A stretch of 64,000 bases of DNA from Haliotis cracherodii (Eukaryota), in assembly GCF_022045235.1 (NCBI RefSeq), contig NW_027266286.1, positions 64,666,001 through 64,730,000 of the forward strand, in the 5' to 3' direction. A program made the position numbers and the translations under genes. The notes beneath the pieces are model-generated. The model did no database searches. It saw nothing but the letters and a program-made list of their open reading frames with translations, and had not been told where the DNA came from. Numbering within the stretch: position 1 is the stretch's first letter; each line of letters opens with the position of its first letter. Positions 4,017-63,573 of this stretch are shown one piece after another.

Positions 4017-4706
4017 TCAAGACTTCCATCCCTCCTTGTTATGACGGTGGGGTTGTGGGTGGGGGTGAGGCTTCACTTGACACTCGGGGCACGCACAGGG
4101 GAATCCCGGGACCCCAGGGGCCTGGAAAGCTGCTGTCGGCAGGGTGAGGTGTGGGTGGTGGTAGGGCGATGCTAACACGTGGCGGGCAGGGTCCACCGTG
4201 GGGGTGAAGTGAGGGGGGATCCCCAGGGGTGGAGCACTTCTCTGCAGAGACAGGTCTTGAACGAGTTTCCTCATCTCCTCCAGTGAACGCGTCAACATCA
4301 CGATGTAGTTCCTCGCAAGCAACAACGTCGACATCTTCGACAGCTTCTTCACCGTGGGGCCATGTGAGTATGGCATCACTTGCCGCAGACTGTCTAACGC
4401 CGAGTTGAGGTCGTGCATTCGCTCACGTTCCCGGCTGTTGATGCGGAGACGAACGTCCTCGGGAACACGTGACCTGGATGCGTTCATGTAGGATTCATTC
4501 GACAGCGGCGACGTCAAACCCTCCGCCTTCGCTTCCAACATCTCCAACGTGATATTGTGATCATACGCCGATCTGGTAGTCTTATCCGTGTTCATATCTT
4601 GATTGTGAAACTCCACGTCTATAGACGAGTCGGACAGATCGCCGGATCTATCCTCACTGGGTTCGAACCTGTCGACCGACTGAGCAACAACCTTCGCAGA
4701 AGACAT
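4017..4706 (-). CDS. Olig: Olig-family bHLH transcription factor, single-exon CDS, 229 aa
   Basis: b[56 protein letters not shown] matches the Olig signature (VMPY.HGP, LLLARNY) better than Bhlhe22/23 (VIPYAHSP, LAKNY). C-terminal PCACPECQ motif. First ATG is at 4706 (the ORF track starts at an upstream TTG). Confidence 0.9.
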
Positions 4707-5664
4707 GATCAAGATGTGTACGGTGGAGTCTCTAGCAGTGTTCTGATGGGGAAAACAGTCGGGGCTGCTCTTATCTCCTCATTCGAAGCCTCCTAATGAC
4801 CGGAACAATGGTCTCCCGTGATGCACCTCTCAATTCTGACTTCTTCACGGTCTCTTGATCTGATGCGCCAACGCGCCTTTTAAAACTCGCATCATAATAC
4901 CTGTCAATCGCAGATAATTGCTTCCCCCTCAGGCTGCAAACAAACCTGCACAATGGGCGCTCCCCAGTGCCTTCTGGGAGGCAACATGATCCTAGTACAC
5001 CTCCCCCGTGAGAACAGCGATCCTTCCTTCACGGAATAACTAGACAATATTGATAAAGTCTGCACATATCACTTCGAAAATTGGCATTAATTATAACCAA
5101 TATTCATAGACAGGCAAACTTGAGCCTGGGTGGCCGAGCGTCAAAAATGTCCAACGTCAGATCTAAATATCAATCTGTAGCCAGTTGATATCGAATTATT
5201 TGTATCGGAACAAGAGAGAAAAATAACAACCAGAGCAAGCGATAAATGAACTTTTGGAAATTCATACTGCAAAACTGACTGACAACTTGAGAAGAGAGCG
5301 AGTAACAGCACGTAGTGATCAACAAAACATGGTGGGATTTGCCGAACGGTTCCCACCCCAATCAATTTCATTGCTTTTGTGGATTTTGCCTTTGCACGTT
5401 TTATTGACTCAAATAAAAAATGTCTTTTTAAAAAAAACAAATCTTGAGTGACAGATATATATTTTGTGAACTTATGAACTTGTGAGTTATATAAAGACAT
5501 TATTTATATATTTTCTATACAGATTTGATTTCAGAACCATAGCGAATGTGGTCAAAATATTAAAAAAATGTTTCATGTAGTTTATTTAAATAATCTCTTA
5601 AATGTGGGGTTGGTCGTTAAATAAAAATGAATATGTGACAAGTCATTACATTTCTTCTCTTCAC

Positions 5665-9592: not shown

Positions 9593-9919
9593 GTGAGTGA
9601 GTGAGTGAGTATGGTTTTACGCCGCTTTTAGCAATATTCCAGCAATATCACGGCGGGGGACACCAGAAATGGGCTTCACACATTGTACCCATGTCGGGAA
9701 TCGAAACCGAGTATTCGGCGTGACGAGCGAACGCTCTAACCACTAGGCTACCCGACCGCCCCTATAGACATTGTTAAATGTAAACGTTATCAGTAACTTT
9801 TCTGAAGCACACACTCACGCTCTATGAGAACTCGCACAGTTATGCGACGGATATGAGTCGAACCCGGGTCTTCGGCGTGACGAGCGAACGCTTCAATCAC
9901 TAGGCTACCCGACCGCCAC
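9593..9919 (-). mobile_element. Composite SINE-A insertion (head fragment + ~90-bp spacer + full SINE-A) within one 13-bp TSD
   Basis: CAAACATGGAGGA at 9580-9592 and 9920-9932; full copy 9593-9762, extra head 9855-9919. Confidence 0.85.
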
Positions 9920-11511: not shown

Positions 11512-11677
11512 AGGGGCGGTCGGGTAGCCTAGTGGTTAAAGCGTTCGCTCGTCACACCGAAGGCCCGGTTCGATTCCCGACATGGGTAGAATGTGTGAAG
11601 CCCATTTCTGGTGTCCCCCGCCGTGATATTGCTGGAATATTGCTAAAAGTGGCGTAAAACCATACTCACTCACTCAC
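11512..11677 (+). mobile_element. Full-length SINE family A with 12-bp TSD
   Basis: TSD TCTGTGGTGTGT at 11500-11511 and 11678-11689; A and B boxes; (ACTC)n tail. Confidence 0.95.
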
Positions 11678-40724: not shown

Positions 40725-41910
40725 TCGTCCGGTTCGATTGTGTTTAGCACGAGTGTATGCAGACTATTGTATTAGTATATGCATGTTTAATGTGAAGTAT
40801 CATATCAAGTTTATTCTTATTTGTTGGTCATCGGCCCGTGTACAAATATATATATACACATATTAAATATCTTGAGCAATAATGAAACATGGTCGGTGTC
40901 CATTTAAGTATGAATGTATAAATATACATAAATATATGCGAGAGACGATGCTTAGGTATTACTGGCAGTTCTTAGACAGGAATCATGTTTGATAAATTTA
41001 GCATATCTTATAAGTACAGGCTTTTCATTGCTGTTGAGTAGCGTTCCATGTTTGGCTATTGCAGATAAACCATCATATTTTTGTGAATATTTATCTCTGC
41101 TGTATTCAATATGTGCACATTTTTAGCGCTGTTGCTGTACAAGATATACGGCTTTTCCACTGGACGAGAGGCGGTCACATGACCATGAAACTTGCGTTAA
41201 TAAGTGTAAGAACGACACAGTTGACACGTTTTATGGAGAATCTATTCTAGAAATGGCGTAAACACCGACGGACTACTTACACATTCGCGAGGAAAGCCCT
41301 TGGAATTCCCTATTACGAATAAATATTACGTTGTTCCTGATTATTTAGACTCTTTAATCTTCAACCTGACGTGTTAGCATACATTGGATGCGTCAGAGAG
41401 TTTGACTGAATGCCCTTTCACGAATATCCTCGTTACGACCCACTTTGAGAAAAGAATTAAGAAATGCACATTCAAACCATCGACTCTATCAGTGTCTAGA
41501 CTGACAGGTGACAGTCTACAGAAATCTAAAAAAAATACCTCAGTATCTCTTTAACACATCTTTATAATCAATGATGTCAATGATCGTCAACTTCGAAAAT
41601 CTCTCCCGTCACGTTTATCGTGTCGGCCATTTTGATTTCCTGTATTTGACGTAACTGTATTACGACGCGCTGATTTGTTATTACACTTGTACATATACCA
41701 AAATAAACTGTGCATTGAATCTTTTATTAACGTTTAATGTATATATACATATGAAATAAATTACACGTCCAACATTGGCTATGTACAATATAGTCACTGA
41801 TGACATAAATAATAACAATTCGTCCAAAATATACAAATTATCCATTCAGATTCCCTCCTTGAGAGGAAGCACTTCAGGCTGCACCGGTTGGCTTATATTA
41901 ACAAGAAGGA

Positions 41911-42073
41911 GTGAGTGAGTTTGGTTTTACGACGATTTTAACAGTATTCCAGCAATATCACGGCGGGGGACACCAGAAATGGGCTTCACACGTTGTGCAC
42001 ATGTGGGAATCGAACCCGGGTCTTCAGCGTGACGAGCGAATGCTTTAACCACTAGGCTACCCGACCGTACCTC
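41911..42073 (-). mobile_element. SINE family A inserted in the L8 3'UTR
   Basis: TSD AACAA(G/C)AAGGA at 41900-41910 and 42074-42084; absent from the paralogous L7 UTR. Confidence 0.92.
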
Positions 42074-42160: not shown

Positions 42161-42823
42161 TTACTGCATGGCTCGCTTGAGTTTAGCACGTGCATTCTGG
42201 AACCACACTTGGGCTACTCTTCTGGGAAGACCCGCCTCTTCTGCGATCATCCCGAGGTCATTTCCGGTGGGGTTGGTGTCAAAGTCGAAGTACTTCTGTA
42301 AAACAGCTACCTGGTCTTCGTTGAAGGCTGTTCGGAATCTCTTGGATTTGGGTCGGCAGATGACATTCTCGTCGTCGGGGTTGAGGACGTGGACTCGGCA
42401 AAGTACGCGGCCGTCGTGGATGGCGAAGTCTTCTCCTGTGGACAACTGTCTTTGGCACGCGCTGCATGAGAAACATGCCAGGTGGTACATGTTCTCTCCG
42501 GCCGATCTGACCCAATCTCCGGACTCGATGTTACGTCGACAGGAACTACACTTGGTCTCTTGAACGCGGGCGAAGTCTCTCTGGCAGAATATGTTACCGT
42601 CCCTAACGAAGCAAGAAGAATGTCCACCAAGCGTCACCTGACACACACAGCAACGCAGACAGTGTTCGTGCCACACGTGATCCCCAGCACGTAGATAGAA
42701 CTGGTCAGTGATAACGTCACAACACGCGAAACACAAGGGGTCAGCTATGTTGAAACTGAGAGCGATGAAGTCTGCGGACTCTTCCAAGTCCGAGGAGAGG
42801 AGGTCATATGACATGTCCGACAT
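42161..42823 (-). CDS. Awh: L8: intronless LIM-homeobox protein, Arrowhead/Lhx6/8-like, 220 aa
   Basis: Intact ORF; AATAAA on the minus strand at 41723-41728. Confidence 0.9.
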   Translation of the reverse strand: MSDMSYDLLSSDLEESADFIALSFNIADPLCFACCDVITDQFYLRAGDHVWHEHCLRCCVCQVTLGGHSSCFVRDGNIFCQRDFARVQETKCSSCRRNIESGDWVRSAGENMYHLACFSCSACQRQLSTGEDFAIHDGRVLCRVHVLNPDDENVICRPKSKRFRTAFNEDQVAVLQKYFDFDTNPTGNDLGMIAEEAGLPRRVAQVWFQNARAKLKRAMQ

Positions 42824-43505: not shown

Positions 43506-44200
43506 AATGATCGGGCTCAGTTTGGCTCGGTCCATGGTGATTTTTCAGTTCAGTTTTCAAAGTATCTCTTAAAAATGTTCATTATTTTGGACTCCTTCTA
43601 TTATCATATTTGAAAAGCCATGAGGTGCTTTGAGGTCAAACATCTTATGAATCGCTCCCAAATCTATTAATATAATATCAAAATATTCGGTTCGAAGCAG
43701 ATTGGCATATTTAACGCTCATTTAAGCACGTGCATTTTCAGTGTAAGCTGTTTTGTCTTTTTAAAACAATAACATCATCTCAGATACAGTCTGAATTGAA
43801 CACGAGTTTTGTTTATTTTCCTACTTTTTCCTGAGATAGAACATAGAGAAACAACTCAAAAAATGCACTCAGTTGTCCTTCAGGTGAGATAGTTCAACAG
43901 TTATACCTTCCTCATTGGTTCATAAGGGGCCGGTCGTTTGATATTCTGTAGGGGCATGTGTTTGAAAAAGAAAAACAATAGCCTTATGTTTACCACGCAT
44001 AAACCATGCTGGATGTTCTGACAAGTGTTTGGCACCTTGTGTCAGAGATACGTCTTGTATAGCTTGACGTGCGGATTAATAAATATTCTGTCTCAAACAA
44101 GTACTTGAAGCCACCTGGACTACTTAAGGTCGGACCGTTAGGCACATATGAGAATGTATTTGCTCATCTCATGTTGTGTTTTAATTGTAAACATGTAAAA

Positions 44201-44365
44201 GGGGCGGTCGGGGAGCCCAGTGGTTAAAGCGTTCGCTCGTCTCGCCGAAGACCGGTTTCGATTCCCGACATGGGTACAATGTGTGAAGCCCATTCCTGGT
44301 GTCCCCCGACGTGATATTGCTGGAATATTGCTTAAACCGGCGTAAAATCAAACTCAATCACTCAA
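44201..44365 (+). mobile_element. SINE family A
   Basis: Full-length match; degenerate TSD TAAA.AT.TAAAAG. Confidence 0.9.
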
Positions 44366-44867: not shown

Positions 44868-45450
44868 TGGTTTAAACATATTCATGTTCACAAAAATGTG
44901 AACATGGATTGGTAAACAAGCGTAACGCTTATGTTAATACCGCTCAATTACACAGAAGACATGATACAATAAATATACCAAAGAAGGTTAGATGTAACAA
45001 ATCAATTGTACATGCCAAGCTAGATGTGTGTATATATAATAAATATATTTGCAGTTTATATTAAACAATTCATTTAATTGAAAATCTGCATGTCTTTAAT
45101 ATGAAGTTTTGAATAGAATCTAATGTTTGGATTTGCTCTTTCTTACTCAAATACGAATTTCCGCGTAGCACTGTTTGTAAAGAATAACCATGTTGGTAAA
45201 AATACATTTTCATTTCGAGGAACATAGTAACTTGTACAAACAAAAAAGAAGTGTAAAGCATCTTCTGTATGGTATCCACATGAACAATTTTTGGTATCCA
45301 AAATATATCTATCATACTGATCTGCGTTAAGATCGCTGCAGCCAAGCCTGAGGCGACTGTGAATAATTTGACAAATCCATAATTTGAATCCAAGTGAAAT
45401 AGACAAGTTGAATCCACTAAATACATGATAAAGATTTTATGTATTTGTAC
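44868..45450 (-). mobile_element. 5'-truncated CR1-group LINE remnant (ORF2 C-terminus + 3'UTR)
   Basis: Frameshifted IIHSRLRLGCSDLNAD...CSCGYHTEDALHFFFVC..Y and LRGN..LS...IQNFILKTCRF; ends in AATATGTTTAAAC. Confidence 0.8.
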
Positions 45451-45562
45451 GTAATATTTAAGAGTGCGGCTAAAATAAACACTTCTGTTTGTCTTAGTGA
45501 ATGAATAGTAGGCATTAAGAAACAATTGACTTGGAGTACTGCACAAATTGATAATCTGTTGG

Positions 45563-45905
45563 ACCGTAACTGTAGATATGACTCGTCAATACATCTCAAG
45601 CCTTAATAAGCCAATGATTGAACTACTGATAGAGTCAATCAAACCTCCGCTATGTGGTTCGTGACGGCGCGTGTCAACATGGCTGACACTGCCGTCACGC
45701 CCGAAGTCGTTCACTCAGTATGATGCACCGTAACTGTAAATATGACGCGTAAATACACCTCAAGCCTCAATCAGTCAGTGATTGAATATCGATGGAATTA
45801 GTCAATCCGCAGCGAGTTTGTACGTGACGGCGCGTGTCACCATGGCTGACAGTGCCGTCACTCCCGAAGTCGTTCACTCAGTCTGGTATGCGTAGAAGTA
45901 TATAA
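45563..45905 (+). promoter_or_regulatory. L9 promoter: 164-bp tandem duplication, each copy with a palindrome and TCGTTCACTC; TATATAA at 45899
   Basis: Units start at 45563 and 45727; motifs at 45707 and 45870. Confidence 0.7.
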
Positions 45906-45987
45906 CGTCATGGACGCACCGTAAGTCATCCACATCCTCTCTCGTCACCTGAGCAGCATCTTCATCTGTAACGTCGTTCGTTCCGCC

Positions 45988-46659
45988 ATGTCCCACTCGT
46001 CGTATATGTCCTCCTCAGCGTCGGATCTCGAGGATGAGATACATTCATATCTCACCAGTCTCAGCCCGGACCCTCATATGCCCATCTGTTTCACGTGCTG
46101 TGACGTCATCACTGACCAGTACTATCTACGTGCTGGGGATCACGTGTGGCACGAGCACTGTCTGCGTTGCTGTGTGTGTCAGGTGACGCTTGGCGGACAT
46201 TATTCTTGCTTCGTCAGGGACGGTAACATATTCTGCCAGAGAGACTTCACCCACGTTCACGAGATCAAGTGTAGCTCCTGTCTACGTAACATCGAGTCTG
46301 GAGATTGGGTCAGATCGGCCGGAGAGAACATGTACCACCTGGCATGTTTCTCATGCAGCGCGTGCCAAAGACAACTGTCCACAGGAGAGGACTTCGCCAT
46401 CCACGACGACCGCATACTATGCCGAGTCCACGTCCTCAACCCCCACGACGACAACGTCACCTGTCGACCAAAGTCTAAGAGATTCCGAACAGCCTTCAAC
46501 GAGGACCAGCTCGCCACTCTTCAGCGCCACTTCGAGATGGACCCCAACCCAAATAGCCTTCACCTTGATCAGGTCGCCATGGACGCAGGTCTGACGAAGA
46601 AGGTGACAAAAGTCTGGTTCCAAAATGCACGTGCAAAACTGAGGAAGTTAAAGCACTAA
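45988..46659 (+). CDS. L9: divergent/mosaic intronless LIM-homeobox protein, 223 aa
   Basis: LIM domains as in L1-L8; distinct N-terminus and homeodomain helices (LATLQRHFEMDPNPNSLHLDQVAMDAGLTKKVTKVWFQNARAK); AATAAA at 46849. Confidence 0.9.
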   Translation: MSHSSYMSSSASDLEDEIHSYLTSLSPDPHMPICFTCCDVITDQYYLRAGDHVWHEHCLRCCVCQVTLGGHYSCFVRDGNIFCQRDFTHVHEIKCSSCLRNIESGDWVRSAGENMYHLACFSCSACQRQLSTGEDFAIHDDRILCRVHVLNPHDDNVTCRPKSKRFRTAFNEDQLATLQRHFEMDPNPNSLHLDQVAMDAGLTKKVTKVWFQNARAKLRKLKH

Positions 46660-46943
46660 TTTCTGTTGCTCAAGATGTACTTACAACATGACAAAAAATC
46701 GGTTATGTTTAACATGCAATGTACTTAGATCTTACAAAGCAGCGGTTCTGCTAGAATCGCTTGTTCATGGTGCTACCTGTGTACATATCTTCTCAGGCTT
46801 TGTGTAACATAATGTACTTTTTGTCCGTCTTCTATGTAGATGTATATAAATAAAAAGTGAAATGAACTTCATGTCAGTCATATATTTCCAGTAATTAGCA
46901 TGTACCCACTTCGATAAATATACCCACTTGTTACCTTTCTAGA

Positions 46944-47106
46944 GGGGTGGTCGGGTAGTCCAGTGGTTAAAGCGCTCGCTCGTCACGCTTAAGACCCGGG
47001 TTCGATTCCCAGCATGGATACAATGTGTGAAGCCTATTTCTGGGCCACCCGCCGTGATATTGCTAGAATATTGCTAAAAGCGGCGTAAAACCATACTAAC
47101 TCACTC
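46944..47106 (+). mobile_element. SINE family A
   Basis: Full-length; TSD ACCTTTCT. Confidence 0.9.
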
Positions 47107-47212
47107 ACCTTTCTTGAGCCCACGTCTGGAAGGCAAGTGTTTCCTGACTGCATGTGTTCGGACTAACGTAATTTCATCATATAGATTAAGTGGAGTCTTT
47201 CACGAATATATA

Positions 47213-47904: not shown

Positions 47905-48330
47905 ATCTGATGGATCGAGTCTGGCAGGAGGGCGGAAGGTCGGTAGTTCGATCCCTAGACGCGTCATACCAAAAGTCGTTAAAAGATGGTACTTGTTACC
48001 CCGCCTTGCGCTTAGCATAAGTGGATAAAACAAGGACTGGTAGGCTCGGAGTCGGTACACCGAGTGAGGATGCTTATAGCAATATTCCAGCAATATCAGG
48101 GCGGGGGACACCAGAAATGGGCTTCACACATTGTACCCATGTCTGGAATCGAACCCGGGTAGTCGGTGTGACGAGCGAGCGCTTTAACCACTAGGCTACC
48201 CCACCGCCCCAACTGTGTTTGAGTGGAGTATTCATGTTAAAACGCACGGTATGGTATCGTAGGGGCTAGCACTAGGAAACCGATAACAGTCTGGAATAGT
48301 GCAAGCAGTCACACACACATACATACATGT
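47905..48330 (+). mobile_element. SINE family C interrupted by an antisense SINE-A (48062-48210)
   Basis: Family C sequence stops after GCTCGGAGTCGGTAC and resumes at CTGTGTTTGAGTGG. Confidence 0.85.
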
Positions 48331-61147: not shown

Positions 61148-61275
61148 TATTAAGTTGACTTCGCGGTGTCCGTGGAAAGTCAGTCAGAGTGTGTTTAATA
61201 CCCGAATTCACGCAGTCATGAATTGGTCTCTCGTTGGATTTCTCGATTTCACATACCAAACACAAAGGTTAAGAT

Positions 61276-61440
61276 GAGTGAATAAGTGTTGGTTTACGCC
61301 GCTTTGAGCATTATTCATGCATTTTCACGGCGGGGGACACCAGAAATGGGCTTCACACATTGTACACATGTGAGGAATCGAACCCGGGTCTTCGGCGTGA
61401 CGAGCCAACGCTTTAACCACTAGGCTACCCCGCCGCCTGT
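61276..61440 (-). mobile_element. SINE family A with TSD GGTTAAGAT
   Basis: TSD at 61267-61275 and 61441-61449. Confidence 0.92.
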
Positions 61441-63420: not shown

Positions 63421-63573
63421 GTGAGTGAGTATGGTTTTACGCCGCTTTTAGCAATATTCCAGCAATATCACGGCGGGGGACACCAGAAATGGGCTTCACA
63501 CATTGTACCCATGTCGGGAATCGAACCCGAGTCTTCGGCGTGACGAGCGGGCACTAGGCTACCCAACCGCCAC
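63421..63573 (-). mobile_element. SINE family A
   Basis: Near full-length match. Confidence 0.9.

Follow-up and report, generated by a model that had tools for sequence, protein, structure and literature searches.

An abalone LIM-homeobox gene is a mosaic of a 423-bp tract, probably copied from its neighbours, and two old, distinct ends

Mosaic conversion between linked homeobox paralogues is already known. The linked, inverted paralogues Dlx-a and Dlx-b of Capitella teleta show mosaic conversion on GENECONV-type evidence (McDougall et al. 2011, PMC3199776), and the same paper cites engrailed/invected of hexapods as a similar case. Among the mammalian ETCHbox genes, TPRX1/TPRX2 and others have undergone repeated conversion that homogenised especially the homeobox, according to Lewin, Royall and Holland (2021, PMC8208926). 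In mammalian gene pairs, mosaic concerted evolution has been described as long-lasting (Carson and Scherer 2009, PMC2720389), and a "mosaic divergence" model of interlocus gene conversion exists for tandem HMA4 copies (bioRxiv 10.1101/2025.10.29.685298). Here we describe L9, a LIM-homeobox gene at the edge of a cluster of nine such genes in the abalone Haliotis cracherodii. The window analysed is a stretch of 64,000 nucleotides (assembly GCF_022045235.1, contig NW_027266286.1, positions 64,666,001 to 64,730,000), and all positions below are those of this window. L9 is a mosaic, in which the middle 423 bases have most probably been copied from neighbouring genes and the two ends are old and distinct.

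The gene (45988-46659, + strand) is an intact single-exon open reading frame of 223 amino acids with the order LIM1-LIM2-homeodomain; the other eight genes of the cluster, L1 to L8, are referred to as L-type. As in Capitella Dlx-a/b and in engrailed/invected, linked inverted homeobox paralogues have in common a mosaic tract of a few hundred base pairs, with the rest highly diverged. In those pairs, however, it is the homeobox that is homogenised, whereas in L9 the LIM cassette and the N-terminal arm of the homeodomain are homogenised, and helices 1-3 escape together with the N-terminus of the protein; unlike Dlx-a/b, moreover, L9 is one diverged gene facing eight donor copies. The abalone cluster resembles the ETCHbox family in being a lineage-restricted, tandemly duplicating homeobox family with apparently repeated conversion across species; the ETCHbox genes are of PRD class, contain introns and have a homogenised homeobox, whereas the abalone genes are of LIM class and single-exon, and in them the homeobox core escapes. 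With the mammalian pairs and HMA4, L9 would have in common that paralogues are closer than orthologues within a bounded stretch and that the rate of conversion varies along the gene, although those studies concern other genes and taxa and used nucleotide and population data, whereas the cross-species comparison for L9 is made at the protein level. It is the escape of the homeodomain helices that makes L9 unusual, and this reversal of the pattern seen in Dlx, engrailed/invected and TPRX bears on how paralogues escape from concerted evolution. L9 offers a clean natural case in which conversion and divergence partition a small transcription-factor gene by domain: the LIM cassette is in step with eight neighbours, and the homeodomain helices are conserved as a distinct type in at least four abalone species.

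The mosaic structure was examined in a codon alignment of L9 with L3 (24717-25379). In the LIM block the two genes differ at 27/426 nucleotides, 10/142 residues and 16/142 third codon positions, against 44/87 nucleotides and 18/29 residues in the N-terminus and 59/147 nucleotides, 25/49 residues and 28/49 third positions in the homeodomain tail. A two-breakpoint maximum chi-square scan of this pair placed the breakpoints at 46087 and 46510, with 25 differences among 423 positions inside the tract and 105 among 237 outside it (Fisher p 5.9e-32; 0 of 200 permutations as extreme). The gene is in this way divided into three segments: an L9-specific, unconverted N-terminus of 33 codons (45988-46086), differing from L1-L8 at 42-45 of 87 aligned nucleotides; the homogenised 423-bp tract (46087-46509), which runs from the first Cys of LIM1 through LIM2 and the linker to homeodomain positions 1-12 (KSKRFRTAFNEDQ); and an L9-specific homeodomain tail (46510-46659), comprising homeodomain positions 13-58 (helices 1, 2 and 3) followed by three C-terminal residues and the stop codon, where 55-59 of 147 nucleotides and 25 of 49 residues differ from L1-L8. 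The original prediction, made from the letters of this DNA, had counted nine residue differences from L3 over 141 codons, a fall to 24/49 identical residues after the tract and a barely alignable N-terminus. Both counts were reproduced, the tenth difference of the LIM block being the boundary codon (I/L, 46084-46086). Its wording that the third positions were nearly identical was right as to low divergence but overstated, as 11% of them (16/142) differ from L3.

Synonymous divergence, estimated by the Nei-Gojobori method for L9 against L1-L8, is likewise not uniform along the gene, the first point on which the original prediction had called for a check. In the LIM tract the proportion of synonymous differences (pS) is 0.146-0.236 and the mean synonymous distance (dS) 0.23, compared with about 2 in both flanking coding segments, where synonymous sites are saturated (N-terminus, pS 0.61-0.72 and dS ~1.8; homeodomain tail, pS 0.63-0.73 and dS ~2.3). 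Among L1-L8 themselves, taken as a control, the mean dS is 0.16-0.18 and equal across all three segments, and because of this uniformity the contrast concerns only L9. Over the LIM block L9 differs from L1-L8 at 27-38 nucleotides, and L1-L8 differ from one another at 4-35, placing L9 at the edge of their spread and not within one sub-group. L2 and L3 tie as its nearest relatives in the tract (27/426 each), with L8 at 32/426. The tract of L9 contains 13 private sites, and its remaining variable sites are shared with changing subsets of L1-L8.

These results are best explained, in our view with good confidence, if L9 is an old functional paralogue in which 423 bp were replaced by L-type sequence through interlocus gene conversion, probably repeatedly. 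Under this reading the N-terminal 33 codons and homeodomain positions 13-58 would have diverged from L1-L8 well before the sampled Haliotis species separated, and the stretch 46087-46509, that is LIM1, LIM2, the linker and the N-terminal arm of the homeodomain, would have been overwritten by non-allelic conversion with neighbouring copies. The presumed partners are closely linked tandem or inverted copies, with L8 as a candidate, lying head to head with L9 at 3.2 kb between start codons; the direction would have been mostly from L-type to L9, and we infer the number and timing of the events in the same way. Both a bounded tract of low divergence that includes synonymous sites and the proximity of donor and acceptor, as looked for in conversion, were found here, and 423 bp is an ordinary length for a conversion tract. 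The edges of the tract are sharp and lie in the same place in all species. They fall where identity collapses to ~50-60%, the flanks being ~40-50% diverged, so that extension of the heteroduplex would be blocked there; the sharp and stable edges are likely because the flanking sequence is too diverged for heteroduplex. Selection for a distinct homeodomain may add to this stability. A stronger version, which we regard as doubtful, is that the edges are held by selection too, a common LIM cofactor interface being forced on the whole cluster and L9 being kept as a homeodomain variant, for example as a competitor or re-targeter of an Ldb-type cofactor, in an array that would be a homeobox cluster with a developmental or germline role peculiar to abalones, like the mammalian ETCHbox, Dux and Rhox arrays. 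If true, selection-held edges would mean domain-selective concerted evolution with a functional reason.

Orthologues from other abalones bear on whether there was one exchange or several. Clustering at 90% identity groups the L9 protein with 223-aa orthologues of H. rubra, H. rufescens and H. asinina, and all three show the same mosaic; the comparison is at the protein level and turns on one contrast, with this genome and H. rufescens on one side and H. rubra and H. asinina on the other. In the tract, L9 of this genome is 10-15 residues away from L-type genes of its own genome and clade, against 19 from H. rubra L9 and 16 from H. asinina L9, so that its distances to these two orthologues exceed those to L-type genes of the same genome. 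The mean tract distance from L9 to L-type genes is 12.9 residues for this genome, 13.8 for H. rufescens, 19.8 for H. rubra and 22.4 for H. asinina. Separate protein trees of the LIM region and the homeodomain, which the original prediction had also proposed, agree with its account: the four L9 form a clade in the homeodomain-tail tree with support of 99/99, and in the LIM tree the L9 proteins of this genome and H. rufescens nest within the L-type clade of these two species (support 98/90 when outgroups are included and 97/90 when they are not), whereas H. rubra L9 and H. asinina L9 stand among the L-type genes of their own two species. A practical consequence is that trees of the LIM region will mislead orthology calls for the cluster genes.

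The same species contrast is seen in single residues. Of the alignment columns that are diagnostic for the two species groups, eight occur in L-type genes and nine in L9, and five coincide (hypergeometric p 1e-3 among 61 variable columns; 1.5e-5 among all 141). In four of these five, L9 and L-type genes have identical residue pairs (S/T, H/Y, E/K-Q, D/G), and in the fifth the gene types have only the H. rubra/H. asinina residue, Thr, in common. Smaller signs of exchange are the L-type Val at homeodomain position 13 of H. rubra L9, a Thr before the first Cys common to H. asinina L9 and one H. asinina L-type gene, and the comparison of L9 between this genome and H. rufescens, in which three of the five LIM differences are L-type variants and the other 81 residues of the protein are identical. 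In the L9 of another sequenced source (organism E), several of the listed nucleotide differences (46202, 46215, 46236, 46288-9) are states found in L-type copies here. Because of the nesting in the LIM tree and the co-variation of residues, exchange after speciation is indicated, and at least one exchange probably took place after this genome and H. rufescens had split from H. rubra/H. asinina and before this genome and H. rufescens split from each other.

Several points weigh against repeated conversion, in addition to the protein-level scope and the single species contrast on which the cross-species evidence rests. An approximately unbiased (AU) test fails to reject monophyly of the L9 LIM regions (p 0.057 with outgroups; 0.285 without). 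In a GENECONV-like permutation scan of 36 pairs, no significant sub-tract tied L9 to a single L copy (best p 0.02). The Ile in the motif RILC is specific to L9 in all four species, and this site has outlasted every exchange. We also looked for a signature of GC-biased conversion in the G+C content of third codon positions (GC3), and no excess was found in the tract (0.66; N-terminus 0.66, homeodomain tail 0.63); such a signature is frequent in converted tracts, not obligatory. Nothing shows a very recent conversion, because no sub-tract matches a single copy and 13 sites are private to L9, and we read this as the lack of any large conversion in very recent time.

The explanation that survives best beside repeated conversion is a single ancient event, either a conversion or an unequal recombination before the Haliotis radiation, after which the LIM tract of L9 would have evolved independently. 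The unrejected monophyly of the L9 LIM regions, the lack of a significant recent sub-tract in this genome, the private sites together with the conserved Ile of RILC, and tract boundaries identical in four species all fit such a history. It would, however, leave L9 equidistant from the L-type genes of all species, against means of 12.9 and 13.8 on one side and 19.8 and 22.4 on the other, and it runs counter to the 98/90 support in the LIM tree and to the four columns with identical clade-specific residues and the fifth coinciding one (p 1e-3). Moreover, the tract dS between L9 and L-type genes (0.23) is not above that between those L-type sub-groups for which H. rufescens has 1:1 orthologues. 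We therefore consider a single event unlikely. As a separate observation, at 46360-46365 a GCG (Ala) codon (46360-46362) in the motif SC-S-A-CQ is found in L8 and L9 only; at this site H. rufescens L9 has Ala, and P0031, the closest H. rufescens counterpart of L8, has Met. A very short piece of L9 may have been copied into its inverted neighbour L8, in which case exchange would run in both directions, with parallel change as the alternative.

The age of the two ends and the relation of the flanks decide on a further explanation, in which no recombination occurred, L9 is as young as L1-L8, and its ends diverged fast under positive or relaxed selection as the LIM region stayed constrained. Among the L9 of this genome, H. 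rubra, H. rufescens and H. asinina, 0-3 of 32 residues are changed in the N-terminus and 0-4 of 49 in the homeodomain tail. Against every L-type gene the same segments differ at 18-19 of 29 alignable N-terminal residues and at 23-26 of 49 residues of the tail. The original prediction had seen in the deviant homeodomain an inversion of the usual pattern of conservation; this holds between paralogues only, and when L9 orthologues are compared, conservation of the homeodomain tail equals or exceeds that of the LIM region. In local alignments no homology was found between the flanks of L9 and those of L-type genes (upstream z 0.1-3.0, downstream z -0.3 to 3.6), and in a BLAST search of L9 flanks against L-type flanks a dispersed repeat of ~165 bp was the only match; L3, L8, L1 and L7 have a promoter of ~130 nt in common (z 20-40). 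Because the L9 flanks lack homology to those of L1-L8, the L9 locus appears to be resident and old, and the LIM tract to be the import.

Divergence without recombination draws on the long stem of L9 in the homeodomain-tail tree (0.66 changes per column) and on the fast evolution of lineage-specific homeobox duplicates described in PMC8208926. Selection on the protein does not, however, yield a synonymous pS of 0.61-0.73 in the ends against 0.15-0.24 in the tract, the flanks of L9 are not alignable with L-type flanks, and ends that are nearly invariant among four species are not fast-evolving now. With saturated synonymous sites, unalignable flanks and invariant ends, this explanation was rejected as very improbable. 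What is supported is that the L9 locus and its end segments are those of an old paralogue and that the LIM tract derives from L-type genes. In both respects the original prediction has stood, the old paralogue through ends conserved in four Haliotis species and saturated at synonymous sites, and the overwriting by gene conversion through a sharp-edged 423-bp tract inside the coding sequence, the lack of flank homology, the LIM tree and the residue co-variation.

No alternative donor of an L9-type homeodomain was found elsewhere in a whole-genome search, and a word search with the homeodomain alone returned only the L9 cluster of orthologues and one protein from the European Nucleotide Archive (ENA; P0004/P0032). 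That protein has an L9-like N-terminus (SISPEIDLPIC) and an L9-type early helix 3 (GLTKKVTKVWFQNARAK, TKKVTK), and in its LIM region the distance to L9 (37-38/142) is no smaller than that to L-type genes (34-35/142).

The mosaic was also checked against independent assemblies. In the annotation of the three other species, which were assembled independently, each 223-aa orthologue shares its contig with several L-type proteins of 220 aa, whose accession numbers neighbour its own. Public contigs from runs of other organisms were aligned to 45400-47200 (1,801 letters), and contigs spanning each of the two junctions were found. The 5' junction (46087) is bridged by contigs of organism B (45442-46137, X7 record 25) and organism E (45969-46319, X16 record 9), and the 3' junction (46510) by contigs of organism C (46221-46724, X15 record 1) and organism E (46384-46713, X16 record 12), all of which extend at least 31 letters to either side of the junction. 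In organisms B and E, L-type contigs match L9 as far as position 46509, and no further, before continuing into GTAGCTGTTTTACAGAAGT, the L-type homeodomain; because they part from L9 after 46509, the 3' edge of the tract lies at the same base in these organisms. An assembly chimera, that is an L-type LIM region misjoined to unrelated ends, might be invited by a LIM tract that is a nine-copy repeat in which short-read unitigs break (X6 records 17 and 21), but it was rejected as practically out of the question given the same 223-aa mosaic in three other, independently assembled species, contigs that bridge 46087 and 46510 and the 13 L9-private sites within the tract. Breakage inside the tract is to be expected of short-read assemblies. 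In two small runs (X15, X16) contigs cover only 45969-46724, plus the dispersed repeat at ~46940-47110, and the adjacent non-coding DNA is uncovered there, though it is covered in DNA runs. This coverage looks like that of an L9 transcript, the label of both runs as RNA being a guess.

In standard homeodomain numbering, the tract extends over positions 1-12 and contains Arg3 and Arg5, which belong to the N-terminal arm. Helix 3 has the same specificity residues (Val47, Gln50, Asn51, Ala54) in L9 and in L-type genes, and the residues that presumably contact DNA bases, Arg3, Arg5, Val47, Gln50, Asn51 and Ala54, are all unchanged. The 25 amino acid differences are located between positions 13 and 46, at 57 and 58, and in the three residues of the C-terminal tail; they affect helix 1, the loop, helix 2 and the beginning of helix 3 (TKKVTK in L9 vs PRRVAQ in L-type), with the core residues Leu16, Phe20, Leu31, Leu40, Trp48 and Phe49 kept. 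The original prediction had named helices 1-2 as the part kept distinct; these are distinct, but the first half of helix 3 (TKKVTK vs PRRVAQ) and the N-terminus belong to this part as well. The LIM portion of the translation shows the ligand Cys/His/Asp pattern (CFTC...HEHC..CCVC...CQRD and CSSC...HLAC..CSAC...CRVH), and Pfam recognises two LIM domains (E 1e-25) and a Homeodomain at residues 164-220 (E 1.7e-16). Residues 26-147 match the solved Isl1-Ldb1, Lhx3-Ldb1 and LMO4-Ldb1 chains by sequence (E 7e-27 to 1e-17). It is reasonable to predict, as the original prediction did, that L9 keeps the tandem-LIM interface of L1-L8 for an Ldb-type cofactor and the core DNA contacts, and presents a different surface on helix 1, helix 2 and early helix 3.

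The window contains nine complete single-exon genes, L1-L9, of 220-223 codons each and all of LIM1-LIM2-homeodomain order, within 29 kb. The L-type paralogues are L1 (17482-18144, -), L2 (21095-21757, +), L3 (+ strand), L4 (28341-29003, +) and L5 (31952-32614, +), these last two in 3.6-kb tandem units, L6 (36058-36729, -), L7 (38688-39350, +) and L8 (42161-42823, -), the nearest L-type neighbour of L9. Relatives of L1-L9 are annotated by NCBI as "LIM/homeobox protein Awh-like", and the best named matches of L9 outside Haliotis are Awh or Awh-like proteins at 45-48% identity. A six-frame search of the whole 1.18-Gb genome found relatives of three kinds: the nine cluster genes, one single-exon LIM-homeodomain gene upstream, and ordinary multi-exon LIM-homeodomain genes. 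Among the last, the nearest is an Arrowhead-like gene on C19, which is also the best non-cluster match in the genome and itself aligns best with an oyster Awh-like protein. A grouping of the cluster with Awh/Lhx6/Lhx8 is suggested by these best matches.

An oyster catalogue lists Awh1 and Awh2 only (PMC5322547). L9 and L1-L8 have the LIM1-LIM2-homeodomain order in common with this Arrowhead, or Lhx6/8, group, including the C19 gene, but differ from it in being single-exon, in their length of 220-223 aa with nothing after the homeodomain, and in being only ~47-58% identical to the canonical Awh homeodomain tail, the canonical gene on C19 being represented here by a single homeodomain exon only (L012:1513-1704:-). 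They also differ in being restricted to Haliotis plus one ENA source. No description of an abalone Awh-like cluster or of a LIM-class expansion was found in the literature searched, the genes being so far auto-annotated only, and this Haliotis-restricted array of single-exon Awh-like genes is flagged here. The further single-exon LIM-homeodomain gene, of 259 aa, lies ~160 kb upstream of the cluster (G000:C23:64551094-64551765; L010:1219-1998, -); its identity to L9 is 34% over the LIM region and 51% over the homeodomain. The start of its helix 3, GLSKKVTQ, is nearer to GLTKKVTK of L9 and to GLSKRVTQ of canonical Awh than to GLPRRVAQ of L-type genes.

Upstream of L9 a TATATAA box (45899-45905, +), ~85 nt 5' of the start codon, is a possible core promoter as read from the sequence only. 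A GTTCACTCA motif stands ~19 nt 5' of this TATA-like box and likewise 5' of TATAAAT in L-type genes, and it may be an old promoter element common to both. Directly 5' of L9 there is a tandem duplication of ~165 bp whose two copies (45557-45722 and 45721-45885) are 82.5% identical and each contain CCCGAAGTCGTTCACTCAGT.

The dispersed ~165-bp repeat of the flanks resembles a short interspersed element (SINE) and occurs at 9598-9763, 11512-11676, 35677-35838, 41909-42067, 44200-44364, 46943-47107, 48072-48210, 61275-61437 and 63421-63555. The start of this repeat resembles a tRNA; ARAGORN called no tRNA on it. At 47047-47107, within one of its copies, the summed contig depth reaches millions in every run examined.

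Opposite L1, L6 and L8 there are antisense open frames of 131-194 aa that start with MARLSLARAFWNHTW (17192-17776, 36065-36460 and 42168-42563, all +), which are probably a by-product of codon usage; opposite L9 no antisense frame of at least 120 aa is present in the list of open reading frames. Elsewhere in the window, 12416-14012 is low-complexity, CA/TG-rich sequence with runs of N (12638-12982 and 13087-13262) and spurious long open frames on both strands. A bHLH open frame of 231 aa (4017-4712, -; Pfam HLH, E 1e-14) lies ~13 kb from L1 and could be a neighbouring developmental regulator.

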